A DNA stretch of 54,431 bases, filler included, from Sluysia triapertura (taxonomy: Eukaryota), in NCBI GenBank assembly GCA_046118255.1. It is 3 parts of 3 records of this genome, joined end to end, with 100 filler letters (N's around TTAATTAATTAA, not from the genome) between each part and the next. Parts side by side here need not be neighbours in the genome. Positions count along the whole stretch, not along the records: positions 39,251 to 54,431 come from JBJNIA010235778.1; 2 more parts are not named here. The stretch is one strand, 5' to 3'. Within the stretch, counting starts at the first letter, position 1. Each line of letters begins with the position of its first letter. Positions 39,251 through 54,431 of this stretch are shown one piece after another. The notes beneath the pieces were generated by a model. That model did not search any database. It saw only the letters and a list, made by a program, of their open reading frames with translations, and was not told the DNA's origin. The position numbers and the translations under genes are program-made.

Positions 39251-40175
39251 ATTTATAAGTAATATCAATTAAAAAAGCGTTTTATTAATGTTTTTTATTG
39301 AAAAAACTTGATAATTTGTAAAATAAAGATTATATTGAATCTTAAATTTTGATTGGACGATTATTTTAAACAATCAAAATCGATAGAATTTTAATATAGA
39401 ATTTAAAATAGAATTGTTTTGTATATGAAAAAGAAAATCTTTCACTGAATCGCGCATATAAGATTTTTGAAGGAACATTTTATATCATTTTTAATCTATT
39501 GACAAACTTAATCTTATTTTATGCTTAAAGATTATATTAAAGTTTAACTTTAATCAAATATTACTCAAGGGTATTACATACTCAATGTTTATAAAGCATT
39601 AATTGGTCTAAATGTTCGCATGTTTAAGGGTACTTTAATACACCGAAATGATCTCAAGGGTCTAAGGTATTTTCTAATTCTCAAAATGATTATAGATATT
39701 ATCGTCTTCATCATTCTTACTATTTATCTGCATTTTTCGCTTCTACATCTTCCTCACTATTCCACGATTTGGGCAATCTCATAATACGAAAATTAAATTA
39801 TGCATTTCAAATACTTTCTATGATTATTATTATTATCACACTAGATCATTTAAACATTAACAAATCAAAGTCAAATATTTATACATTAATATTTATTGTG
39901 GGCCAATAAAAGTATTTTAAAATTTATCATCATCAATTTCATTTACACATTCAGATTAATTTAATTTAATTTTATTATTTATTTTTATTTATATTTAATT
40001 CGAACAAAATAATTCTTTTTATGATTTAATAGAAAATCTATATATTATTTCATTTATTTTCTCAAGTGAAGTGCAATTTTAATTTCTTATTTCTAATTAG
40101 CCAATCATAATAATTCTAGAAAATATAGCTATTTTATAAACTATAAAATATTAATTTATTATAATAAAAATAAAA

Positions 40176-43093
40176 CTAACAGCATGTTTTCTTTTTTAGT
40201 AACACTCGATATTTGCTACATTTACAGTGTTTAATTTTAATCTTCCAGCCAATCAATTTCATTTTGCAATTTGATTTGTTACACTGTGTCCAGAATGGTC
40301 TTGGTAACTGAATATGACACCCTAAATTAAATCTAAAATATATACCATCTTCGAACTTACGGAACGGTTTAATCGCTGTCTTTTGTTTCATGTTACAATC
40401 ATATGAACATTCTCCCTCAATACCTTTGAAATATGTAAATTTGGTTTTATAATATTTGTCTTTGTAACATTTTGTATTCACTGACGGTTTTGGACAACCT
40501 ATAAAAATAATAATTTATTTAATAATAATTATATAATCCATCCTAACCACAACATTTGCATTTCTTTTTCGACACTTCTTTCCAGACACATCTGCAATGC
40601 TTATGATCAAGTATTTGAGTAAGAGTATGAATTTTTTTCATGCATGTTTTGTGTCGATCGCATTTACCAACGATAATTTTCTTTCTGTGTCCACAATAAA
40701 CCAAATATTTATGATGCTGAGTTTCTTTAATACATTTGCCATGCTTGAGTAAAAATTTGGTTACCTTGGTTACATATTTACCATGGTTTTTATCACAAAA
40801 TTTATCCACACGACTTTTTGGACATTTACATCGTCTATAAAACGATTTAGAATTTGAAATATGACATTTTTTATGCTTTGAGTCCCACTTTTTAAATATT
40901 ATAATCTTTTTGCCAATGTAACCAGTTGATTTGCTACACTTTTTAACAACAATTTTCGTTGGACAACCTATTCAAAAATCATTCAAAATTTTTAACGTAA
41001 TTAACTTACGGCAATTTCGTTTTTTAACATGTATTCGAACTTTGCATGAACAAGTGTGAAAGTTTTTGAATTTTTTTACCAATTTTTCCACATAATATTT
41101 ACCATTACATTTCGATTTATACAAACGAACTTCACGTTTACAAACTGAAATTAAAAACATTATTTACTTAAATTGTTCTACTGATAATTGTAAGTAGGTT
41201 ATTTTCTAATAAAAATTAATATTACATATTGGTTCTTTTTTCGTACGAATGATTTTAACACATCGATTAGCTTTTTCAATCCATTTTTTGTATATTTTCA
41301 TATAAACATAATGACCATTATTTTTGTCACAAAATTTTCTATATACTGGTTTCTTTTTTGGACAACCACATTTTCTATACCATACTTTCTTTTGGGGAAT
41401 ACATTTACAATCTTTACGTAAATAGTACTTTTTGGTGTACTTTCGACGTTTAATCAACAAATTACATTTCGATCTATGGAAATAACCGTGATGACAATCT
41501 AATAAAAATAAAACCAATTTTAATACTTTTTAATTACTTATATTCATAAGTAGATTATTTTTTACAAAAAATTAAACTTACAAACTGGTCTTTCAGAAAC
41601 TGTTACTTTTTTCATACATTTTTTATGTAACTTATTAAAAATGTAAAACTTTTTAATTTTCATCCATTTATGACCTTCATTGTGGCATTTGATTTGTTCT
41701 TTTCCTTTGTGATTTTTGCAATCTAAATTTTACAAACAGTGGTTTAAAAAACTTACGACATTTACCACGGAACACGATTTTCGATCGCCTCAAGCATTTA
41801 CAATGTTTTGCAATATAGAATCTTTTAATTTTCAAGTAAATACCATTAGTATTTATGCATTTTTCATCAAAATTAATTTTTTTCGAACAATGAATGTCTT
41901 TACGCAATACACGGTGCTTCTTATAACACTTTTTATGTTTTCTAACATAAAAATACTTTTTTGAAATCCAAGTTTTGTTGTCAACACATTTTGGATGAGT
42001 TTTATATCCACTAGGACATTCTAAATTAGACAAAATTTCATTTCAATTTCATTGGTTCATATAAACCAATAATATTGTAATAATGATAAATGTATAATAA
42101 ATTGTAATTTAACATACTGCATTCGTATTTTTGATACAACTTTTTCTGTTTACATTTACAACCATCTTGATATTTTTTAATGAACACCAAATAACCCCAT
42201 TTCGAATGTTTATGACATTTTCGACCGATCTTCTTTTTATAAACTGGACAGACTGAACAAAATTCAATTTTAATAATGATAGATCTGCAATTATAAAAAA
42301 TTCACTTACATATTCGACGTTTAGTAAGTTTCATTCGGGGTTCACAATGGCAATAACGAGCAACTTTATATTTAACTGTTTTAACTACTGATTTTCGAGT
42401 TTTATCGCAATATACTTTCACGGATTTATGTGGACATTCTAAATAATAAATAATAATAAATAATAATTATTATTATCATTATTATTTTTTATTATTATAT
42501 AATGTTTGAAGATCAGCATCTATTAAAACAAACTAATAAAAACTTGAGTAAACTGGAAACATATTAAGTGAATAAATTTATACACATATTATCTACTATT
42601 GTTTAAAAGTAGAAAAAAATTCTGTAAAAATGAATCACATTTTAACATAAAAACATTAATTCTATTGTGAAATGATGTAAGAGAAAAATAGAAAAATATT
42701 TAGAAATAATTATTTCATTCACTAGAATGTATTAGGTTTTGTCGTCAAATTTTATTTTAAAAATTCTGTATTATCAAAAAATAGAGCATTTTAATTAAAA
42801 GAAAATAAAACAAATATAATTGCAACAAAGTACTAAGAAATTATTATTATTATCTAACTATATTACTTGATGGTAAATTTAATATAGTACGTTTTGTTTA
42901 AATAAATATTTATATTTTTACAATTTTTATTTAAAATTTTCTTTTGTAATTATTTTTTTTATTAGTCGTATTAAAATTTATTTATCTTTTTATGTATACT
43001 CATTTAGCTATACGTTTATTTGCATTTGTTTGAACTTATTAGTATATGTTTATTAAGTTATTTTAATTTTGTCATATAAAAATTTAATAATAA

Positions 43094-43127
<34 letters not shown>

Positions 43128-46100
43128 GTAAAAATAGTATTAATGATAATAGAAATAATAATAATAATGATAATAGTAATAATAAAAANNNNNNNNNNNN
43201 NNNNNNNNNNNNNNNNNNNNNNNNNNNNNNNNNNNNNNNNNNNNNNNNNNNNNNNNNNNNNNNNNNNNNNNNNNNNNNNNNNNNNNNNNNNNNNNNNNNN
43301 NNNNNNNNNNNNNNNNNNNNNNNNNNNNNNNNNNNNNNNNNNNNNNNNNNNNNNNNNNNNNNNNNNNNNNNNNNNNNNNNNNNNNNNNNNNNNNNNNNNN
43401 NNNNNNNNNNNNNNNNNNNNNNNNNNNNNNNNNNNNNNNNNNNNNNNNNNNNNNNNNNNNNNNNNNNNNNNNNNNNNNNNNNNNNNNNNNNNNNNNNNNN
43501 NNNNNNNNNNNNNNNNNNNNNNNNNNNNNNNNNNNNNNNNNNNNNNNNNNNNNNNNNNNNNNNNNNNNNNNNNNNNAATTTCTTACTCCATATGCAAAGT
43601 TTTGTTTTATATTTTCGCTTGCATTTACAATTTTTAATATATCCATATATTTTTCGAACAATCATTTTTCCATTTTTGAATTTTTTGCCTTTTTCTTCTC
43701 CTAAAAAGCCAACAGGACATAACACTCGATGGAGTTGTTCCTTGTGATATTTACTACATTTTTTATCATGCATAAATATCTTCAAATCTAAAGTAGTTCG
43801 AATATATTTATGTCTGATACATTTTTTCCACAATTTCTTTTCCGAAGCACAACAGCACGGTTTTCGGATCACTTTGACCAATTTTCGTACACATTTCTTG
43901 GAAAACATCAACCTTTCATCGTGAGCCAAACGATACCGATACCATTTTGTGGTGGAATAACAATGTTTGGAACAATGCTTATGAGGACCCAGTTTTAAGC
44001 AGTTCTTTGGACATGGAATTGTAAGTTTATGATACAAATTTTTACATCCACAAGGTTCTACAAATACTTTCCGTTTGGGTAGACAACGACAGCCATGTCG
44101 AACTAGTGTTTTGAAAATAATTTTTCGAAATTTCAATTTCATATTATGTCTCGAATAAGTACACGGTGATGTTTGACGTATCATTACTTTGTGACACACT
44201 GAATTTATTAATATTTACATTAAATATGCTACTGTTATTTATCAGTAGATTATTATTATTGAAAAAAACAAATTAAATCGAACTTATTGGAATTTTCTTA
44301 TTGATTAAAACTCGCAGACACGTCTTGTGTTTTGTCATATGAAATGTTTTGGTGCTATGAACAATAATACCACGTCTTTTGTCACAATATTTGATTTTCT
44401 GTTTTTTGGGACATCCTAAAAATTATTATATTATTTAGATAATATTAAATTTTTTATATTATTAAGTTTGTGTTAGACTTCATAAAATGGACTGACAGGG
44501 AATCGAACCCGGAACCTTTAGCTTCACAGCTGTGCGGTTTGATAAATTTTAAATATGTTGGGATACAGGCCTAAGGTGCCATTTAGTATAATTGAATATA
44601 ATAATCTAAAATTGTTAGACGGAAGCCCAATTTTTTCAGAAGAATATCATTTCAGGATCCCAAGAACCAAGTGATCCAAAGACAAACGTGTCAAGGGAAA
44701 CCTGACATTTAAGTTGAATTTTGACGGAATATTTCGTAATATTGAAAGTTTGGGCCGCCTTAAATTTCTCATAATCATCAATCGGCTACTTGAGAAAAAG
44801 TTGGGAGGAATTGGTACATTGCGCTTGCATATCAGGTGTTCGATAGTCACCAGTAAGTTGGTTTTCCGTATCAATTTTGACTGAGAAGCCCATTTGTTTA
44901 AGTTTACTATGTAAACATTCGAGAATTTTATTATGTCTGACTGTACTGCCAATGATAGTTCGAGGACAAAGAAATATAAGTGGGCAATTGTTTTCTGTTC
45001 AAAGCTACGTAACAGAAAGATGCAGTCGAATGTTTTGTGGAGAGAAATTAAGCTTAATAATACTGTTTCTAGCCTTAATCATAAAAATCCAACTTTGGTT
45101 GTTTAATTGTAAAGAAAACGGGCGATCAGATAGAGGACTTCTCATGAAGCATTCATCAAATGTTGGTATTGGAAATGTTAATCATTCATGAAGATATTTA
45201 CCTACTTTCTCTTTATGAAACCGATTTAATATGACTTCGTTTTCACCAAGGATGTAGTATTTGATTATATTATGTTTGTTTTATTATAGTCAATTATTAT
45301 ATTATTAAATTTGTCTTTATAAAACTAACGACATCGTATTTTCTTTTGCAAAAGTTGTACTTTGCAAACATTGTTAATTAAATAATAAACGAATTTCTTT
45401 TGCAGAATATAATAACCAAGACACGGGGTCGTTGTAACTTTAGATGGCGGACAACAGCATTTTCCAACAATAGATTTTTGTAATGTTAAACGACATTGAC
45501 ATTGTTGTGGTGACCATTTTTCAACATATTTTGTTTTAATACACGATTTCTTGTGACATTTATAAATTATCTGAAAAGTATATTAATTAGACTTTAGTGA
45601 TATTTTTTGGTATATTTTTTTTACCAATCCTACTTCATTATTTATGTGATTGGTTAATAGTTTATACAATTTCGAATGGCTAAAGATTGGACGATATAAT
45701 TGGCTAATAAAAAATGAACTACAGTGGTGGCCAAATTATCAGACTAAAGACAACCATTTTTGTGACAACACAATTAACTACAAATCAAAATGTTGTATCA
45801 GTACTTTATTTTTCCTTCTTTATTATGCAATAATTTCCACGGATGAGCTTGGGACACACGGTTTTTGTCAGAGTTTCAGTAAGTTCCGTCCTGATGGTTG
45901 GTTTGTGAGTAGAACTCTCTTTTTGGTAATCTCTCACAGATTATCTATGGGATTCATGTATGGAGAGACTTCAGGCCAGGGTATCAAATATAAGCCTAAT
46001 AATTTGGCCACAAATGTATAAAATTTATTGCTTCTACAAATCACATTGAGTGATCCATATCATAATTTGGATGTTCGTAAAATATGGTTTTAGACTGAAA

Positions 46101-49100
46101 AGATAACAAAAACGAATTTGTTACTAAATATATCATTGTCCGTGAATATTAACTTGAATTCGATTTGTTATTATCAAACATTATCTGAAAATCTGCTATT
46201 ATTTAAATATTATTCATCATTTCCCTTTTTGTAGCATGTTCAATAAATAGTTAACCTTTTGCTTCTTTTCACAATTAACATATTTCTTGCTTTTTGTAAC
46301 TATCTTTTTGCATTTATGATGCTCTTCCATTCGATATGTAATTTGATAAAATACCCATTTATTATCTTTACAATAAGGTCCTTTTCGTTTAAATCTTGGA
46401 CATTCTAAAATAAAATAAAATAATAATAAGAATAATTTAAAACTTACTGCATAAAACTTCAACTTTTCGTGATGAATAATGACATTTACAGTCTATAGCT
46501 TCAGATTTATGATAAACCACTGTTCTGGCTCCAGATTTGTGATCACATTTAGTACTAGTCGCCCAAGTTCCTTTACATTCTATAATAATGATACAAATTA
46601 TAAAAATGAACATATTTTAATCTATTTATAATAATAAGTAAATAAAAACTAAAAATTTCATAACTTACGAGCTACTTTTAAAATACGAGTGAATGTTTTT
46701 TTTATACATTTAACACAATTTTGATCATTATATTCATAAATAACTTTAATCAAACGATTATTTTTTTCGCATTTAGTATAAGAACCGTGTTCATGACGAC
46801 ATTCTAAATAATATCAAATTAACAAATGCCAACATAATCATACTGCATTCTTCCTTTGATTTAGTTTCGATATATCTACACATCTTTTTGTGTGATTGAT
46901 CACGAAAATATTTACGTATTATAGACCATCGATATCCTTTACAAAAATCACATTTAGTACGTCGTTGTATTGGTTGTTTTGGACAAGCTGAAAATAAACA
47001 CAATTTATCATATTATATTTTACTGATTATTGTCAGTATATAATTATTTGTTATTATTTATTTTTCTTACTTCCACAGGCGGAATATGTTCTTGCTATTA
47101 ATGGCATACATTTTCCATTATCGGCCAATTTGTAGCAAATTTTCTTTGTCATAAGATATTTATATTTCGGATGACACTGACTTTGAATGGTTCGACAATC
47201 AGGACATTCTGAAAATATGATTGGATAAATATTTTTTTGAAACATGTAAACTTTGAATTAAATCCAATTATTATTATGTAATGTTTAATTTTATTGGTTA
47301 CATTATAAATCAATAAAAATCTTACTACAAGATTGTGGATAACAAGTTAATCGACACATTTGTTTGTAAAATTCATGATCACATTTTCCTTCATGTTTAA
47401 TCACTTGGCAAACCTTAGTAGCAGCTTGATCTTGACATTTTACTTTACATAAACCACAAGTTAATGGACAAAATTCTTTCATAACCTCAAATTCACTTTT
47501 ACATCGACCTTGTTTTTGGTATTCAAGACATTTTGAATGAGACATTCGATCCAAACAAACTTTAAAAAAATTAAATTTAATACAAATAAGCTACTTATAT
47601 TAATAAGTAGACGTAAATATGTAAAAAAATATTTCTTACCATCTCTTAAACATTTACACGAAGATGGATGGACACAAATATTGCCATCTAATATATAACC
47701 AGGTTTACAGTCACAGCCATTTCGATGGGGTAATTTAAAGCATCGTTTACTTGTTTCAAAAAAATAATTTTCACACGTTTTAGGGCATGGATTCATATTT
47801 GTTACAAATAGTTTATTTTTTCCACAATTTAAAGCTAAAAATAATAACAAATTTTCAATTACTTACTAAAGTAAAAAGAATAAATTTAACAAAACAAAAC
47901 TATTCAAAACAACTAACGACAAAATTCAATCGTTCTCCACATAATAATTTTGCCTTTTTCTGAGCAAGCTTCAGCAGCTATAGCATGAACTTGACATGCA
48001 GCTTGGTACATCTTAATTGCATCCGGCCAAACTGAACAAACTTCTTTAATACAGCCACGATAAAAATGAAACGCTGTTTCACTACACTTCATAAATTGAC
48101 TATTGATTTCACCAGACAATCTACCACAAAATTTGTGACCAATTTCACGACTATGATGTTTCAAGCATTTTCTGGCATACTTAAATTCAGCTACTAATTT
48201 GCATTCATCACCGCCAGCATAATGTTTTTTCATTACATCATCGAGAGGGTTTCCTAGGTAAGAAATGTCGCAACTCATTTAATTTAAAATTAATTATTTT
48301 TTGTACTTAATTAATCTTTATAGTAGAATTATATTTCGCAATGTCGCACTTACAGGACGCAAAAAAATCAGATGTAAAATTGTTCACATTTCGTCAAATA
48401 AAACTGTTGATCACTGCTTTTTCATCATTGTCACTATGATCACTACTCTTCTATTTCACTTAGGTATTCTTTTGATGAAGGAAAATGCGAGAAGTTGGTT
48501 ATATACCCATAATATAGAAATCCGAATGAGAGTAACGAAGCGATGAGACTAGTAAATTATTTATCCATAATCATAGTTTAAGGCTTCCATAATTCTTAGA
48601 TACAATCAAATCTAAAATACCCAATCATACTATATACATCTGATATAGCCAAGCGCTAACATAAATAAACGACGCATACTCAACACTTCTGAAGGGTCAA
48701 TAAGCGTTAAATTCTTCAGAACTCTACCTGGTGACCCGTACCTAAAGGGTTAAAGAATTCTTAGATTATAATTAATGATAATAAAATAATTAATTAATTT
48801 TATAATGTTTATATTTCAAAACAACTGCAAGATATTTTTAATCATTTCAGAAATAGCCAAAATGATGTATTTCAATTTAGCACAATTTAATTTATTTTTA
48901 AATATATTTAAAACGAATATGAGAAGTTAAACAATCGTACTCACTTACGACCACAGTATGAAAAAAGAGTACTTCAATATTACTAATTATTCGGTTAATT
49001 GTTTATTATCATTATAGTCATTATAGTTATTATCATAATGAACAGACTTTATAATTAGTTAGTTTAAAATTAAAATTCAAAATAAACTACCATTACAATT

Positions 49101-51762
49101 TCCACATAACCCCTTGAATCCATGTTGTTTAAAAAGTCCCACACTAATATAACCACCACCATGACCATTATATGCAACTGCTAAGTTGCAATGTGGTGCC
49201 ACAAATTGTAAATACTCTCCTGTAATAAATATTCGCACTTTTTTATTGTAGTAAGGCAACTTTTCAGATTCTCCATTTACCTAATAGATAATTTTTTTCA
49301 TAAAATAAACTACTAATTAAAGTAAGTAAGTAAATATCAACATTAATTTAATTTATTATTTGTAAGTTAAATATTAACCTTATCAAATTCATTGAAAAAT
49401 GTAAAGAAGAAGGTATATATTATTTAGATTTTCTTACTTAGACTAATCATAATTTAACAGATTTAATGACTGTAATATCTGTGATATATTTTTATCATTG
49501 TGTCTATTTTACGAGTTCAGGTTAAAATATCGTTCAATAGACGCATCTTGAATAAAAGTTATTTAAACATTAAAAAAGAATATATTTCTAGAATTTGTTA
49601 CATAATATGAAATGACAGAACTTAAATATCAAATAAATAATTAAAAATTAAGATTTTTATAAATTTTCAACCAATAAAATATTATATATTATCAAATAAT
49701 ATAATTTAATTTAATAAAAGATATATTAAAATAAAAAAATAATATATTAATTTATATTGCGCTCATATCTAATACAAAGTAAGTACTCAAAAGCGCTTAA
49801 GGTAAATAGTTCATTATGATATTTCTATAACAAAAAGAACTTTGCCTTTTTTTAAATATTTCATAATTAGACATTCTCTGGTAACTGGCTGTATATATAA
49901 CCTATCATCTGTGTAGATTCCACATGTTTCATGTCTCGATGAAATATCATTTCTAAGAGTATTCAGGACTTCTGTAATGTAAGCAATTTCTAAATTATTG
50001 TCATGATTTTGAATTCCATTCCTGCTTTTATTGGTAGCCAATGTAATAAGGTGTTACATGAGTTCTTCTTCCCATTTGGATAATTAGCCTTGCTGCTTGA
50101 TTAATTATTAACTTTTTCACTTTTCTATATGAAATTGAATACAATAAACCATTATTAAAATCTATGTTGCTAGTTATCAATGAATGAACAATAAGTTTAT
50201 CAGTTTCCTTATTAATAAATCTTCGAATATGTGATATTTTCTTTAATGATACAATACAATTAATATTTTCTTCCATGTTAATTAATTAAAAGGTAAAGCA
50301 TTCATTGCTACAATTTAAAATATAACATTTTAAATATTCTAATATTGTTTGATGGACATTTTACTGGACTAAGTTTTGAAAATTTAGATGAAAAATACAT
50401 TTTCATAGTATATTATAAAATACTAATATGAAAATTACAGCGTCTGTCTACAAATTAATTGATTGACATCTTAATTGATTGTGATTCGTCCAATGAGTAG
50501 GAAATATGACAATCTATTTCAAAACTTATATACAAAAAGTCCAATAGTAATGCAAATATCAGAATGAGTCAATTATAATTAATAAAGTGTGCATTATACA
50601 TTGAAACTGATAGTGCTAATCGATAAATGTCAAGTTTAAAAAATACGTAATAATACTATAAGCTCTAGAAATTGAAAACAGATTTAAAAAAAGCTTCAAT
50701 GGGATTTAATTATTATGCTTACTATTAATAGTAATTTCAAAAGTCAAAGATAAAAAGATTACGTGTTAATTTTAGAGCAACGTGTGAAATCAATCGAAAT
50801 GTCAATTATTTCCCTAATAATGGTATATTTGTTGTGATATAAATTAAATTAAATCCAACTAACATAGATTTCTTTGTTATTTGTAAGTAAATATTTATTA
50901 TTACAAAATTTAATAAGTTGACCAGAAAATTTTCCTTTAACAGAAATAGCAAATATTTGATAGGAACATGTCGACTTAGAATTAATCCAGCTTGATAATA
51001 AAATGCTGCATTTACCAGATGTTGCAGCCAAAAATCGACGTTTATCAAATGATAAAACATTACCTTTACCATAGTGATAACATTGGCATGCTAAAACGAA
51101 AGTGTAATATTGAATAAAATTTAAAAAAAATTCACCGTATTTTGGTTGCCATTTTGGTTTTGGATCACATATCTCAATATGTTTTCGTTTTTTCAGCTGA
51201 CAATTTTTATTTGTATTACGAACATAGTAAAGTGTTGTTACTTTACGTTCACCTTTTTTACATTTATGACGTCTTGTTATTGTTTTAGAACATGCTAAAA
51301 TCGATATTTTATTTCGAAAAAAATTAATAACTTACGACATTTAACTTTATTTGTAAATGTTTTTGGTATACAGTGACATTCTTTGACAATAAATTTTGTT
51401 ACTTTACGTTTTGCCCATCCATTGTAACATTTTGTTTGAAAAGTATTATGTCTAGGACATTCTAATTTCATTTAAGATTTAGTTTAATAATAATATATAT
51501 AGTTTTACTTATTTTCTTTGGTATTCGTTTGATATGTTTTATACATTTATGCTTTACAACTTGATAAAAAGTAGTGATTTTTAATTTATGATTTTTTGCA
51601 CATAAAATTGTTGATTTAGTATCAGGACATTTTGTTCTAAAATTAATAAATTGGTTATTAAAATTTATTTTACTTAGTAGCATTAATAATGATGGCAGTT
51701 GTTACAATAGTAACAAATAGGCATAATGTAACCCAACTAAAGTTTGGGTTTAGCATAGCCAT
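40176..51762 (-). CDS. large secreted Cys/Lys-rich modular protein: signal peptide, 3 modules, VWD-C8-TIL, 2x ShKT, ~25 cationic Cys-rich modules (about 1,730 aa)
   Basis: 25 GT-AG exons with matching phases (5'->3'): 51762-51674, 51636-51509, 51461-51336, 51294-51136, 51090-50864, 49280-49091, 48253-47918, 47834-47640, 47559-47326, 47208-47071, 46987-46844, 46803-46669, 46579-46448, 46404-46256, 45570-45330, 44415-44284, 44198-43587, 42438-42310, 42252-42118, 42020-41757, 41722-41582, 41498-41226, 41144-41010, 40967-40548, 40498-40176. Sum 5,187 nt, open frame. The 3' end is ambiguous (TGC TGT TAG could instead be a T|gttagt donor) and the gap at 43189-43576 could hide an exon. Confidence 0.88.
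44470..44622. repeat. tRNA-like repeat: 3' part on - strand (44470-44544) back-to-back with its 5' flank on + strand (about 44550-44622)
   Basis: Reverse strand CCGCACAGCTGTGAAGCTAAAGGTTCCGGGTTCGATTCCCTGTCAGTCCATTTTATGAAGTCTAACAC, then + strand ATGTTGGGATACAGGCCTAAGGTGCCAT...AATCTAAAATTGTTAGACGG. Confidence 0.75.
44623..45250 (-). mobile_element. R2-superfamily (NeSL/Utopia-like) non-LTR retrotransposon C-terminal fragment: zinc knuckle plus restriction-like endonuclease
   Basis: Frameshifted reverse translation: SWIFMIKARNSIIKLN ... TIAHL ... CPRTIIGSTVRHNKILECLHSKL ... YRTPDM ... TKY ... LDTFVFGSLGSWDP. Matches the WRFIHRARLN / ETLxH...C...RHN / RPD / KY / VGSLGSWDP motif series of this clade. 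Confidence 0.75.
45722..46016 (-). mobile_element. internally deleted Tc1/mariner element with both TIRs and TA target duplication
   Basis: TA|CAGTGGTGGCCAAATTATCAGACT ... AGCCTAATAATTTGGCCACAAATG|TA. The internal sequence is the reverse-complement homologue of 10530-10705 (WPEVSPYMNPIDNL*E). Confidence 0.85.
47326..47559 (-). CDS. exon with two tandem ShKT domains
   Basis: CLD...C...GRC...MKEFCPLTCGLC and CQD...C...GKC...KQMCRLTCYPQSC; six-Cys ShK pattern. Confidence 0.87.
47640..47834 (-). CDS. TIL (trypsin-inhibitor-like) domain exon
   Basis: CGKN...PCPKTCEN...GCDCKPGYILDGNICVHPSSCKC. Confidence 0.9.
47918..48253 (-). CDS. C8 domain exon
   Basis: FCGRL...FMKC...FYRGCIKEVC...ACQVHAIAAEACSEKGKIIMWRTIEFC (C8 signature ending WRxxxFC). 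Confidence 0.88.
49091..51090 (-). CDS. von Willebrand factor D (VWD) domain exons (51090-50864, 49280-49091)
   Basis: ACQCYHYGKGNVLSFDKRRF...SGKCSILL ... YVNGESEKLPY ... FKGLCGNCNG|NPLDD; canonical GLCGNxNG end motif. Confidence 0.88.
49745..50700 (-). mobile_element. L2-clade LINE remnant (ORF2 C-terminus and 3' tail)
   Basis: ISHIRRFINKETDKLIVHSLITSNIDFNNGLLY...QAARLI...HVTP and adjacent-frame HWLP match the L2 ORF2 motif (IRxFL...LIHAFITSRLDYCN.LL...NAAARL...HITP..LHWLP). L2-type tail AAGCGCTTTTGAG. A weak ALLLDF...DCH RT motif lies near 50550. Confidence 0.8.
51674..51762 (-). CDS. first coding exon, signal peptide
   Basis: MAMLNPNFSWVTLCLFVTIVTTAIIINAT(K). The phase-2 donor AA|gtaaaa matches the next acceptor across a 37-nt intron. 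Confidence 0.8.
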
Positions 51763-54330
51763 GTTAACTGAAAAATCTGAAGCTAATCGGTTTTATATAT
51801 ATTATTGAAAATACCCGCTTATTGAGACATGATTTATTAAGATTTATTTCAAAGTCAATATTACAAGTAATTGTAATAAATTTTTTCCTTTGTAATTAAT
51901 TAATATACATAAAATATGTTTTGTTAAACACAGGTCTTATGTGGTTGACGTTTTTTGATGAATTTGTACTTAATACTTGTTCAGAGAATATTGTAACATT
52001 GTTCGTGAAATATTTTCAAAATAATAAGGGAAAAAATTAATCCAGAACTTCATAATTAGATAGAATTTAATATAGAATAGAAAGAATAAGAAAATATTGT
52101 GATGAATTTATTATTTAAATTTCAAATGGAGATAAATATAGAAGAGAGAGAAATCCGAAGTAAAAATGATTAAAAATGGTAAAGAAAGAAAAAATTAGAA
52201 GAAAATCAATAATAATTATAGTAACAAATCTAAATATCTAATACAATATCTAAATAAATTTTAAAATTATAAATAAGAATTGACTCAAATTCCTTATACC
52301 AAAAAATATAATAAAATAAAAATTGCTGAACAAATATTATAATAAAATAAAAAAATAATAAATTATATTCATTGTACAATGAAGTTTTTTATTTACCTGA
52401 AAAGCAAATGATTAGTTAAATTATTAGGTTTAAACGAAGTCGAGGAGAAATAAGAAATATGAAGGTGCATGTATCTATTTAAAATTTATTGAAAATTATT
52501 TGGACAGAAGAACAATAAAAAGAGTATTTTTTTCAATAAATAACTTAAATTGCCTTCTGTTGGCTCTCTTCATATTAGCAGTGATCAAACGCATATTGTT
52601 TTAAATCTTTGATAAGTGTATCAATGTTCTTATGTAATTATTTAGTTTCTTCTGAACTGTGTGTATTTCGTTTTTAATAAATTCTTGATTACCTTTTTCT
52701 ATATTATTTACTATTTGTAACTTGTGTTATTTTAATTTGATTGGACGCAATCTTCGTCCATATTAGTGAATCTAATATATTAACAAATTTTAATATTTTT
52801 GCTATAATGATGTTTGAAATTTCAGGAATAAGCCTTAGTAATAGAAATATTCGTTTAATATTAGACAAATTAGGGTCTATATAATAGGTGCAGTTCTGAA
52901 GTACAATATTCAATGTGAATATTTTTAAAGCTTAACTGCGGTACTCACGAATAAAAGCTTATTCTGCTAGTGCTTTTCTTACCCTAGTCTTGCGAGTTCA
53001 CCAACGTACTAGTCTTATCGATTAGATCTAGCCGTTGGATTTTGAGATTAAAAAAAGTAACGTTTGTGGAGGTTATAAATGGCTTAAAATTTTATATTAA
53101 TGCTTTTCTTCAAAACGAAAATTTTAAGAAAGGAATTTTAATTCAGCAATAATTTAATTAGGTTCTTACACTGAATCTTTTAAGATTAATAACAATGATT
53201 TTAATGAGGTTCTATAATGAACCTTAAATTTTACTTCTAAGTGATTTTAATTATAATTAGACGGATTTTTTAAAAATTTAATGGAATTAACAATAAAAAA
53301 TAATTTATATTAAATAAAAATAAACAATTCAAAGGGTAAGTGATAAAAAATTTTAAATGGATTAATTCAAAATTTTGATAAGCTACTTCAATAAATAGTA
53401 GCATTCTTTTAAAAATTTTAAAGGAGAATTTAAGTCTAAATTTTAAAAATGCAACATTAAAAATTGCTAATCACCGTACATAAAATAACTAAAGATAATT
53501 CGTATCGGAATTGAAATAGAATACGAAATGAATATGGGAGAACTGAATAAGATTATTGCTGATGTCGACTACTTTTATCAAAAAAAGCTTTTGTAAAGAA
53601 TTGGAACTGTAGATTTAAAAATATATCGTGTCACAATTTTGAAGTTTATGTTTAATTATATATTGGAAAAATGACCTTGAAAGTCAAGCAATTATTTTAT
53701 TTTAAACTATTTTTAAATTTTTAATAATAGCAATAATAATAAAAATTAATAATAATAGTATTCCCTTACTTTTGTTAAATTAAATCCTCGAAAATATTAA
53801 ATATTAAATTAGCGAAAACATTAAAATCAATATTTCTATTGTAAATAATGTAAAAATTGCTTGTAAATATTGTAAATTTAAAAGAATTTTTGTAAATTAA
53901 ATGAAAAATTATTGTTAATTAATTGTTAATAAATGAAAATGTATTGTTAATTAAATCATTAATTTTAACTAAATATCAAAGATCGAAAAAGTTTAAAAGT
54001 TTAATAAATCATTAATTTTAATATTGAATGTCGAAAAGTTTAAAGGTTGAAATAAAGATTTATTTATATTATTATTCATTCATTTATATTACTAATTATT
54101 TGATTAATCATTGAACTCATTATTTAATTTAAATATTTATATTAAAAAACGAAATTATTTATTTATTCATGGAACTGTCTATCGTAATTAATTAAAAATT
54201 TAATAATCCGTTTAATTGTCAATCTTATTCATGGAACTTATCAACAAAAAAATCATATAAAAGGTGTAGCGAAATTCACCATTATCACAGTTATACTAAT
54301 AACAATAGTAACGCGATTTGCACTTCTCAT

Positions 54331-54403
54331 TTTTGGATACGTGGATCGTTCGCAGACATTATTTGGATACGTGGATTGTTCACAGACATCGTTCGGATAC
54401 GCG
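54331..54403. repeat. 30-bp tandem repeat, about 2.4 copies
   Basis: TTTTGGATACGTGGATCGTTCGCAGACATT / ATTTGGATACGTGGATTGTTCACAGACATC / GTTCGGATACGCG. Confidence 0.75.
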
Positions 54404-54431
54404 AATTAATTACAAATATTAAATTTAACAC

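Follow-up and report, generated by a model that had tools for sequence, protein, structure and literature searches.

What kind of gene, if any, lies on the minus strand of this Sluysia triapertura locus, and what would its product do? In the window (the whole stretch of DNA analysed, 54,431 nucleotides with filler), 26 exons running from the ATG at 51762 to a TAG at 40176-40178 splice into a single open frame of 1,715 amino acids plus the stop. The earlier note had joined small ORFs and extra exons into one frame of about 1,730 residues, and splicing them gave this closely similar length. From the start codon onward, the features are:

51674-51762, minus strand: exon 1, the ATG and a signal-peptide-like N-terminus (residues 1-30), phase-2 donor GTAAAA
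51509-51636, minus strand: exon 2, Cys/Lys module 1 with 3 Cys (module HMM, 19 bits)
51336-51461, minus strand: exon 3, Cys/Lys module 2 with 5 Cys, canonical (module HMM, 35 bits)
51136-51294, minus strand: exon 4, Cys/Lys module 3 and a linker (module HMM)
50864-51090, minus strand: exon 5, first part of VWD, assigned by its position beside exon 6; alone it has no Pfam match
49566-50313, no strand assigned: high-copy repeat in intron 5 with tail-like retroelement ORFs, judged by eye (contig word depth 60,000-633,000)
49091-49280, minus strand: exon 6, central VWD, ending in the motif GLCGNCNG (PF00094, profile positions 79-144 of 156)
48257-48817, no strand assigned: moderately repeated element in intron 6 (contig word depth 1,400-6,200)
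47918-48253, minus strand: exon 7, end of VWD (NPLDD), placed by position, and C8 (PF08742)
47640-47834, minus strand: exon 8, TIL (PF01826, full length, 1-55)
47326-47559, minus strand: exon 9, two ShK (ShKT) domains (PF01549, 2 stretches)
47208-47071, 46987-46844, 46803-46669, 46579-46448 and 46404-46256, minus strand: exons 10-14, five single-module exons, all starting in phase 1 (module HMM)
45330-45570, minus strand: exon 15, a degenerate module followed by a second (module HMM); phase-0 intron between exons 14 and 15
44284-44415, minus strand: exon 16, with weak donor GTTCGA and a single module of 3 Cys (module HMM)
43587-44198, minus strand: exon 17, about 4 modules in 204 codons, with residues 970-1034 atypical and rich in Cys (module HMM; no Pfam match)
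43189-43576, no strand assigned: assembly gap (N) inside intron 17
42438-42310, 42252-42118, 42020-41757, 41722-41582, 41498-41226 and 41144-41010, minus strand: exons 18-23, eight modules (module HMM)
40548-40967, minus strand: exon 24, 140 codons, 3-4 modules (module HMM; no Pfam match)
40498-40361, minus strand: exon 25, the penultimate module (spliced frame)
40321-40176, minus strand: exon 26, the last module, with TAG at 40176-40178 (spliced frame)

All 25 introns of the model have canonical GT-AG borders and 22 of them are in phase 1. The frame is far beyond chance, since a stop is expected once per 11.8 codons at the local base composition and an open run of at least 203 codons has a probability of about 1.6e-8 by the same calculation. 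Exons have a GC content of 30.4% versus 16.4% for the short introns. The tiny introns (34-117 nt), a GC of about 25% and a TTTTTCAG acceptor sitting 5 nt upstream of the start ATG are compatible with several invertebrate groups and favour none of them. Because 20 of the 25 introns hold an in-frame stop and retention of three others would shift the frame, only two could be retained; the intron between exons 25 and 26 (39 nt, stop-free and in frame) could be read through in this way. Three of exons 18-23 end in T/GTAAGT or T/GTAATA (the slash marks the exon end), so that the donor consumes the last Cys codon. Exon depth in contig word counts is about 20-35, which corresponds to single copy. An independent contig build has no frame-changing differences in the gene, and the single exonic allelic difference, at position 51516, is synonymous. 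The high-copy repeat of intron 5 has no Pfam match and its ORF no protein match; neither this ORF nor an Rfam search helped to place the source among animal groups. The locus is one intact, single-copy, multi-exon animal gene with a predicted product of 1,715 residues.

It is very unlikely that this single-gene model is wrong, either because two genes are present (split at the assembly gap, or continuing past 40176) or because the locus is untranscribed or decaying and still open only through recent origin. The true length of the assembly gap within the model may differ from its run of N, two donors are weak (GTTCGA of exon 16, and GTTAAC), and the terminal TAG falls within a possible donor, T/GTTAGT. 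However, the gap opens 10 nt into the intron (exon 17 donor GTAAGA at 43586-43581, N run from 43576), and on its far side comes a (TAA)34 microsatellite at 43085-43185, with about 650 nt of non-coding, AT-rich DNA between it and the exon 18 acceptor. Both gap edges are thus non-coding, and the frame is kept across the gap because both flanking junctions are in phase 1 (1/1). Exon 17 has no stop and ends in a phase-1 donor, and exon 18 begins in phase 1 with neither an ATG nor a signal peptide, which leaves neither side complete unless it is joined to the other or to further similar exons; the gap may hide additional module exons. Decay is also at odds with the absence of a frameshift from all 26 open exons across 11.6 kb in which a stop would be expected every 12 codons or so, and with a Cys framework that is retained although module identity has fallen to about 20%, which implies long-standing selection. 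An AATAAA at 40160, 16 nt downstream of the TAG, argues for an end at this point.

Pfam was scanned exon by exon and the modules were counted with a locally built module HMM. The resulting order is a signal-like start, three Cys/Lys modules, VWD-C8-TIL, two ShK domains and about 23-25 more modules, which bears out the domain order and module numbers of the earlier note. The N-terminus has a 17-residue hydrophobic core followed by a short polar Asn-Ala-Thr-Lys stretch. All four families exceed their gathering cut-offs: VWD in exon 6 (E 7.4e-8, 33.3 bits versus 22.9), C8 in exon 7 (E 2.6e-7, 31.3 versus 23.7), TIL in exon 8 (E 5.4e-7, 30.1 versus 24.5) and ShK in exon 9 (E 1e-10, 42.4 versus 20.9, in two stretches). 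C8 and TIL lie on consecutive exons, 7 and 8, straight after VWD, and in exon 5 GKGN replaces the usual GDPH motif of VWD. Beyond VWD, C8, TIL and ShK, the Pfam scan of every exon and of 24 modules returned nothing. The TIL exon matches TIL' of VWF (E 0.012), the ShK exon matches the cysteine-rich domain of CRISP-2 (E 0.002) as well as ShK-type peptides, and among sequences of solved structures the best match of the C8 exon is a weak one to the IgGFc-binding protein FCGBP (E 0.3).

The composition of the chain is extreme, with 19.2% Lys, 9.7% Cys (167 residues, of which 166 are in the mature part), a pI of 9.87 and a net charge of +331. The tail, already described as polycationic and Cys-rich, contains 21.9% Lys and 10.1% Cys. 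As had been claimed, the spliced protein has no Pro/Thr/Ser mucin region along its length (S+T+P is 12-13% throughout, 13% overall, with 4 NxS/T sequons) and no transmembrane segment, its sole hydrophobic window being the N-terminal signal-like h-region.

The Cys/Lys module itself is about 44 residues long, has three invariant Cys and follows the pattern C-P-x7-9-(K)C-x17-22-(C)-K-C-x9-11-(C). It occurs about 27 times, in three copies ahead of VWD and about 23-25 downstream of the two ShK domains, and 14 of 24 modules have an odd number of Cys. Scanned singly against Pfam at E<=10, the 24 modules match no family. AlphaFold2 gives one module a pLDDT of 88, with strands at residues 5-12, 18-29 and 32-43, a predicted three-stranded antiparallel beta-meander. 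In the two-module model (pTM 0.43) two successive meanders appear as beads; one of the five models is confident. The rod-like tail of the earlier note is an inference; the modelled pair has the form of two beads with poor inter-module confidence. Fold searches with one module (PDB Foldseek, a wide VIA-align search with a best Z of 4.9, and ESM Atlas) and the Foldseek search with two modules returned generic beta-meanders only.

No homologue of known function was found by word, metagenome or module-profile searches with exon-sized and module queries. Word searches with exon 17 (203 residues) and exon 7 with its C8 (111 residues), and two metagenome scans with the same exons, gave no relatives within their reach of 0.55-1.75 times the query length, and the ESM-Atlas feature search with exon 24 had a best score of 0.75, below the useful level. 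An exhaustive profile search with the 24-module alignment gave one match, P0001 (E 7e-5); it was rejected as an unrelated repeat protein that has only an 'HGCRC' motif in common. In simulation the profile search recovers relatives at 30% substitution and loses them at 50%, which places its limit at about 70% identity; half-profiles miss the other half of the protein's own modules at library size, since the composition-bias correction of HMMER costs 30-95 bits. Given this correction and the limits on query length, blank searches for relatives are weak evidence. The earlier note recognised no named family with this architecture, which agrees with the lack of a Pfam or specific fold match, but at the low power of the relative searches it is not proven.

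The module may represent an undescribed domain family, a Lys-rich, disulfide-stapled beta-meander with a three-Cys core. We put this forward tentatively and with more doubt than confidence. Some 27 copies on a polymeriser of the D-assembly type would give a folded, protease-resistant polycation, an independent and structured answer to charge-based adhesion and cohesion, for which flatworms use disordered Gly-Arg-Lys repeats. The odd-Cys modules could give the material a built-in cure through thiols and disulfides, and its release might come from a secreted polyanion.

Several known systems carry the same central unit. Flatworm ap1 proteins (Mlig-ap1, Mile-ap1 plus ap3, and Tmed-ap1) consist of a signal peptide, a C-type lectin domain, vWD-C8-TIL and EGF repeats, with flanking Lys/Arg-rich regions proposed to act by charge (PMC6745481, PMC9229212). 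The predicted protein resembles them in its putative signal peptide, its one vWD-C8-TIL core and its strongly cationic regions, and a combination of charge and cohesion is proposed for both. It differs in that the C-type lectin, vWC and many EGF domains of ap1 are not detected by Pfam: Lectin_C and VWC have no match in the exons or modules, and EGF-type matches are sub-threshold (E 0.01-0.035) and overlap the TIL of exon 8 only. Moreover, the cationic parts of ap1 are low-complexity Gly-Arg-Lys repeats, whereas here they are folded, Cys-stapled modules, and ap1 has no ShK domains. Within ap1, the cores of Mile-ap1 and Mlig-ap1 are about 40% identical, and the hallmarks are that adhesive gland cells express the gene and that its knock-down abolishes attachment. 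Compared by domain description, the best reading is that the protein is an analogue of flatworm ap1 that stands outside the ap1 family.

With gel-forming mucins and VWF the predicted protein shares VWD-C8-TIL, a CGLCG-type region (GLCGNCNG), a TIL that aligns to TIL' of VWF, a high Cys content and a predicted secretory route. Those proteins, however, have the D assemblies D1-D2-D'D3(-D4), and a scan of all exons finds a single one here, with no PTS domain, no VWC and a tail that is cationic instead of glycosylated. A CTCK domain has no Pfam match in exons 24-26, and the 3' end could extend further if the TAG is within a donor. The unit is likewise common to FCGBP, zonadhesin and alpha-tectorin, which have tandem D assemblies, many with an autocatalytic GDPH, in contrast to the one assembly with GKGN here. 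The ShK pair recalls ShK/ShKT (SXC) proteins such as sea-anemone ShK, CRISP, MMP23 and nematode astacins, in that both domains have six Cys, but it is internal to a very large protein in which no protease or CAP domain was found. It probably serves as a structural or interaction module rather than as a channel toxin.

On composition and domain logic, the explanation we favour, at not quite even confidence, is a polycationic polymer that is joined by disulfides and acts as glue, coat or matrix; the similar functional inference of the earlier note is thus a reasonable one. The predicted protein would enter the secretory pathway. VWD assemblies are established mediators of disulfide multimerisation, and the VWD-C8-TIL unit may act here as in VWF, mucins and related glues, with N-terminal regions that self-associate non-covalently and then through disulfides. 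In the tail, small cationic beads, each folded and stapled by disulfides, would follow one another as on a string and form the folded counterpart of the low-complexity Lys/Arg-rich regions of ap1. These beads could bind polyanions such as the glycocalyx or GAGs, biofilm-conditioned surfaces, or acidic partner proteins or polymers, and their unpaired or exchangeable Cys could tie chains to one another in a network that does not dissolve. Such a glue, cement, coat or matrix polymer would owe its cohesion to disulfides and its adhesion to Lys side chains together with abundant Tyr and Phe. Two-ended polymerisation in the style of mucins and VWF cannot be assumed, because there is one D assembly and neither a C-terminal cystine knot nor VWC; and because the mature Cys total is even, all Cys could pair within one chain.

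The importance of such a protein is potential. If the polymer reading is true, one chain would combine a polymerising head (VWD-C8-TIL), dense Lys beside aromatics and a scaffold that is folded and disulfide-stapled instead of low in complexity. Such a chain would be a natural blueprint for wet adhesives or coats, relevant to bioadhesion and biomaterials for its charge, aromatics and thiols on a rigid repeat. It would also be a case in the evolution of mucins and VWF, in which a glycosylated tail was replaced by a cationic module array through duplication of phase-1 exons. Even if its role lies in walls or in defence, the product would be a clean case of a module family, specific to one lineage, that was added to an ancient polymerisation unit.

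Unlikely, but the alternative that survives best, is a structural protein in the wall of an eggshell, cyst, capsule, cuticle or extrusive organelle. Such a protein would be insolubilised by disulfides, and its charge would serve for packing with an acidic component of the matrix and not for sticking to surfaces outside. It would share with a glue the high Cys content, the odd-Cys modules, the lack of a glycosylated region and the secretory start, and nothing in the sequence separates the two readings. In several invertebrate groups the proteomes of matrix and capsules commonly include ShK-type domains, which favours a wall, while chitin-binding, ZP, collagen and cuticlin domains are absent from all exons by Pfam. 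Among flatworms, planarian regulators of the extracellular matrix carry ShKT domains (PMC6453901).

The protein could also serve in host defence or the armouring of mucus, with a VWD scaffold like that of FCGBP or hemolectin-type clotting and mucus proteins holding cationic, defensin-like beads that immobilise microbes; we consider this distinctly unlikely. Many antimicrobial peptides are built as small cationic, Cys-stapled beta-sheet units, as the beads are predicted to be. VWD-C8-TIL is common to FCGBP, albeit with a weak match, and the bacteriocin laterosporulin and other small beta-proteins are among the noise-level fold matches. These fold matches are at background, though (best Z 4.9), and neither defensins nor any other antimicrobial-peptide family is matched by the 24 modules in Pfam. 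FCGBP-type proteins, too, are made of many D assemblies with GDPH, against one assembly here that has none.

An organiser of the matrix that binds polyanions or GAGs, or a signalling scaffold, seems quite improbable; here a heparin-binding array like midkine or pleiotrophin would tether GAGs or sequester ligands. Midkine and pleiotrophin have Lys-rich, disulfide-stapled three-stranded domains, and both they and the predicted protein carry small domains of this kind in tandem, the three-stranded antiparallel sheet being a prediction here. Pleiotrophin is the top Foldseek match of the two-module model (E 0.23, TM 0.27), midkine-b ranks 38 in the same search, and the C-domain of pleiotrophin matches one module in VIA-align with Z 3.5 at rank 47. 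All of these structural scores lie within search noise, however; there are about 27 copies rather than two, the Cys spacing differs, and PTN_MK signatures (PTN_MK_N, PTN_MK_C) are matched by none of the 24 modules at E<=10. In the binding of polyanions, midkine and pleiotrophin are likely functional analogues.

A venom or toxin precursor with the ShK domains as its active parts is scarcely credible, since the two domains, although they match ShK-type toxins and CRISP cysteine-rich domains, make up 78 of 1,715 residues and lie mid-chain in a very large structural protein without obvious processing sites, unlike the short secreted channel toxins with their Lys-Tyr dyad, and since ShK domains are widespread among non-toxic matrix proteins and proteases (PMC6453901). 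As read from the sequence, neither copy retains that dyad, its position reading Lys-Glu in one and Tyr-Lys in the other.

The piece at 39251-54431 (the third record, JBJNIA010235778.1), to which the analysis was confined, has a G+C content of ~25% and one obvious coding feature, a series of Cys/Lys-rich stop-to-stop segments at 51700-40179 on the minus strand; no tRNA genes were found in this piece, and no Rfam family scored above threshold. Setting exon borders at canonical splice sites, after reading of the three-frame translations, gives a minus-strand model of 26 exons that runs from an ATG at 51762 to a TAG at 40176-40178 and is open over 1,715 codons when spliced. All 25 introns are GT..AG, with donors that are mostly GTAAGT or GTAAGA and T-rich acceptors ending in TAG or CAG, and 22 fall in phase 1, against two in phase 0 and one in phase 2. 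Twenty introns measure 34-117 nt; the five long ones (1583, 837, 685, 914 and 1148 nt) contain repeats or an assembly gap. The model bears out the earlier note, which had joined small ORFs and extra exons into one frame of ~1,730 aa.

At the local base composition stops are expected every 11.8 codons, which puts a 203-codon open run at P ~1.6e-8. The exons have 30.4% G+C versus 16.4% in the short introns, and their A+T content is highest at third codon positions. An in-frame stop lies within 20 of the 25 introns, and keeping any of three others would put the frame out; in-frame retention is possible only for introns 4 (51091-51135, 45 nt) and 25 (40322-40360, 39 nt), which are stop-free multiples of three and would add 15 or 13 residues. 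Neither flank (39251-40175, 51763-54431) shows coding-like sequence on either strand. The only public run found to contain the locus is DNA-like and probably the source sample. Its Logan contigs were compared over 46200-51800; they carry no frame-changing differences in exons 1-14, and the exon depth of ~20-35 is that of single-copy sequence. The sole exonic allelic difference, C>T at 51516 (plus strand, one contig, about half depth), is synonymous by reading of the codon (AAG to AAA, Lys to Lys, exon 2), and intronic differences occur at 49085 and 49409, along with a 13-nt deletion at 48319. That this is one intact, single-copy gene is close to established.

Pfam, scanned exon by exon, recognizes four families, all exceeding their gathering scores:

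Exon 6, minus strand: VWD domain (Pfam E 7.4e-8)
Exon 7, minus strand: C8 domain (Pfam E 2.6e-7)
Exon 8, minus strand: TIL domain (Pfam E 5.4e-7, full profile length)
Exon 9, minus strand: two copies of the ShK domain (Pfam E 1e-10)

No further Pfam family was found in any exon. The N-terminal part of VWD is assigned by position to exon 5, which has GKGN in place of the common GDPH motif. Among solved structures, the TIL domain aligns with VWF TIL' (E 0.012) and the second ShK with the cysteine-rich domain of CRISP-2 (E 0.002), while the C8 exon matches FCGBP weakly. Protein properties were calculated from the spliced model. Its single hydrophobic window, at residues 6-27, is a signal-peptide-like h-region, presumably followed by cleavage, and the sequence predicts with near certainty a secreted product with no membrane anchor. 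Lys (19.2%), Arg (5.6%) and His (4.7%) are abundant and Asp+Glu make up just 5.6%, resulting in a net charge of +331 (pI 9.87). Cys accounts for 9.7% (167 residues, 166 of them past the signal region) and Tyr+Phe+Trp for 10.6%. S+T+P reach 13%, with four N-glycosylation sequons, so the suggested lack of a Pro/Thr/Ser mucin region stands, as do the putative signal peptide without a transmembrane segment and the single D assembly (VWD-C8-TIL) with two ShK domains, whose presence is hardly in doubt.

The remainder is mostly a cationic Cys module; repeated rounds of a locally built HMM against the model give three copies before VWD and ~23-25 after the ShK pair, where three and ~25 had been counted by eye. 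The ~27 modules almost certainly make up ~70% of the chain. Across ~44 columns, 24 copies align with a mean identity of 28% and three invariant Cys; Pro is frequent after the first, Lys precedes the second and third, and two additional Cys are each found in only ~9-12 copies. As cut, 14 of the 24 have an odd Cys count. Three exons end T/GTAAGT or T/GTAATA, so that their last Cys codon is lost to the donor. The majority of modules are single phase-1/phase-1 exons, and exons 15, 17, 20, 22 and 24 contain 2-4 modules apiece. Since the exons show no DNA-level tandem repeat, the array is old, and it appears to have arisen through exon duplication, with some introns lost afterwards. One region of exon 17 that is rich in Cys (43962-44040, aa 970-1034) and has CxxxC, CC and CCC motifs lies outside the module profile, matches no Pfam family, and may be a second small unrecognised domain.

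AlphaFold2, given the 24 paralogous modules as alignment, confidently predicts a three-stranded antiparallel meander (strands 5-12, 18-29 and 32-43, pLDDT 88), the middle strand being lined by hydrophobic or aromatic positions. A two-module exon gives two meanders in series, with one of five models confident (pTM 0.43). These models support a "beads on a string" layout; as to the disulfide-stapled rod of the earlier note, they bear out a series of beads and leave a rigid rod conjectural. No specific fold relative was found by Foldseek against the PDB, by exhaustive VIA-align (best Z 4.9) or in the ESM Atlas, and no Pfam family recurred among the 24 modules at E<=10. For the two-module model, pleiotrophin is the first Foldseek row (E 0.23) and midkine-b ranks 38, and the pleiotrophin C-domain has Z 3.5 against one module, all within noise. 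Midkine and pleiotrophin have Lys-rich, disulfide-stapled, three-stranded heparin-binding domains, and serve only as a functional analogy for the modules.

All searches for relatives, among them exon word queries and a module-profile search, were blank or spurious. The word searches reach only proteins of 0.55-1.75x exon length, so a full-length annotated orthologue is invisible to them. With library-size statistics, a profile built from half of the modules misses the rest, as the correction for composition bias costs 30-95 bits. The full profile would recover the protein itself (E 6e-144); in simulation, relatives at 30% substitutions are detected and those at 50% are missed. The 1.84-billion-protein library has no representative above roughly 70% identity, the profile search being blind to more distant ones.

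From its sequence, the product is best classed as a putative secreted VWD-C8-TIL protein carrying an unrecognised cationic module array. Gel-forming mucins and VWF are defined by several D assemblies, a PTS domain and CTCK, and FCGBP and zonadhesin by tandem D assemblies and GDPH; the predicted protein has none of these. The architecture is striking, though invertebrate genomes commonly encode large secreted repeat proteins that are lineage-specific. The nearest case in the literature is the flatworm adhesive protein ap1, whose vWD-C8-TIL core is joined to Lys/Arg-rich regions; these are proposed to keep the glue attached to the glycocalyx or kringle receptor of the animal, and to be displaced by a polyanion upon release (PMC6745481, PMC9229212). 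However, ap1 has lectin, vWC and EGF domains that are missing here, and its cationic part is Gly-Arg-Lys low complexity rather than folded modules, making it an analogue and the predicted protein not a demonstrated member.

The polymerising glue, coat or matrix protein proposed earlier is a plausible hypothesis and the leading one. The D assembly would gather chains and allow disulfide linkage, as in VWF, mucins and mucin/VWF-derived glue proteins; the folded cationic beads would bind polyanionic partners; and unpaired or exchangeable Cys would cure the material. A structural role in the wall of an eggshell, cyst, cuticle or capsule is unlikely, a host-defence scaffold rather more so, and a GAG-binding matrix organiser is improbable; these readings draw on the same features as the glue, coat or matrix protein, and the sequence by itself does not separate them. 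The chance that the gene model is mis-joined is slight: the two sides of the gap depend on each other, with exon 17 lacking a stop and exon 18 lacking both a start and a signal peptide. A toxin precursor, drawing again on the same features, is very improbable.

The N run begins at 43576, beyond the exon 17 donor GTAAGA (43586-43581). Its opposite edge is a (TAA)34 microsatellite (43085-43185), probably the cause of the assembly break, followed by A+T-rich non-coding DNA as far as the exon 18 acceptor at 42439. Non-coding DNA at both edges places the gap (43189-43576) inside intron 17, with phase 1 on both sides and a continuing reading frame. Extra phase-1 module exons could be hidden inside it, and continuity across it is that of the model only. 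A strong acceptor-like TTTTTCAG at 51767-51774, ending 5 nt upstream of the ATG, could receive a 5'-UTR exon or act in trans-splicing; an in-frame stop further upstream still favors the ATG at 51762 as the start. The stop TAG lies within T/GTTAGT (40176-40182), the donor form seen after exons 7 and 15, and the gene might splice onward to exons past the piece edge. No module-like frame is present in 39251-40175, and an AATAAA lies at 40160.

The upstream flank at 53779-54401 has no visible coding potential and contains several short A+T-rich tandem repeats with periods of 22-53, and a 30-bp repeat at 54328-54401. Intron 5 contains a very high-copy repeat (49566-50313) and intron 6 a high-copy one (48257-48817), with contig word depths up to ~633,000 and ~6,200 versus 20-35 in exons. 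Two short ORFs in the intron 5 repeat resemble by eye the C-terminal tail of a retroelement polyprotein and are unrecognised by Pfam and by protein word search. In intron 14, a minus-strand W-P-x-x-S-P-x-x-N-P-I-x-N-L stretch broken by stops (~45900-46000) looks by eye like a Tc1/mariner-type transposase remnant.
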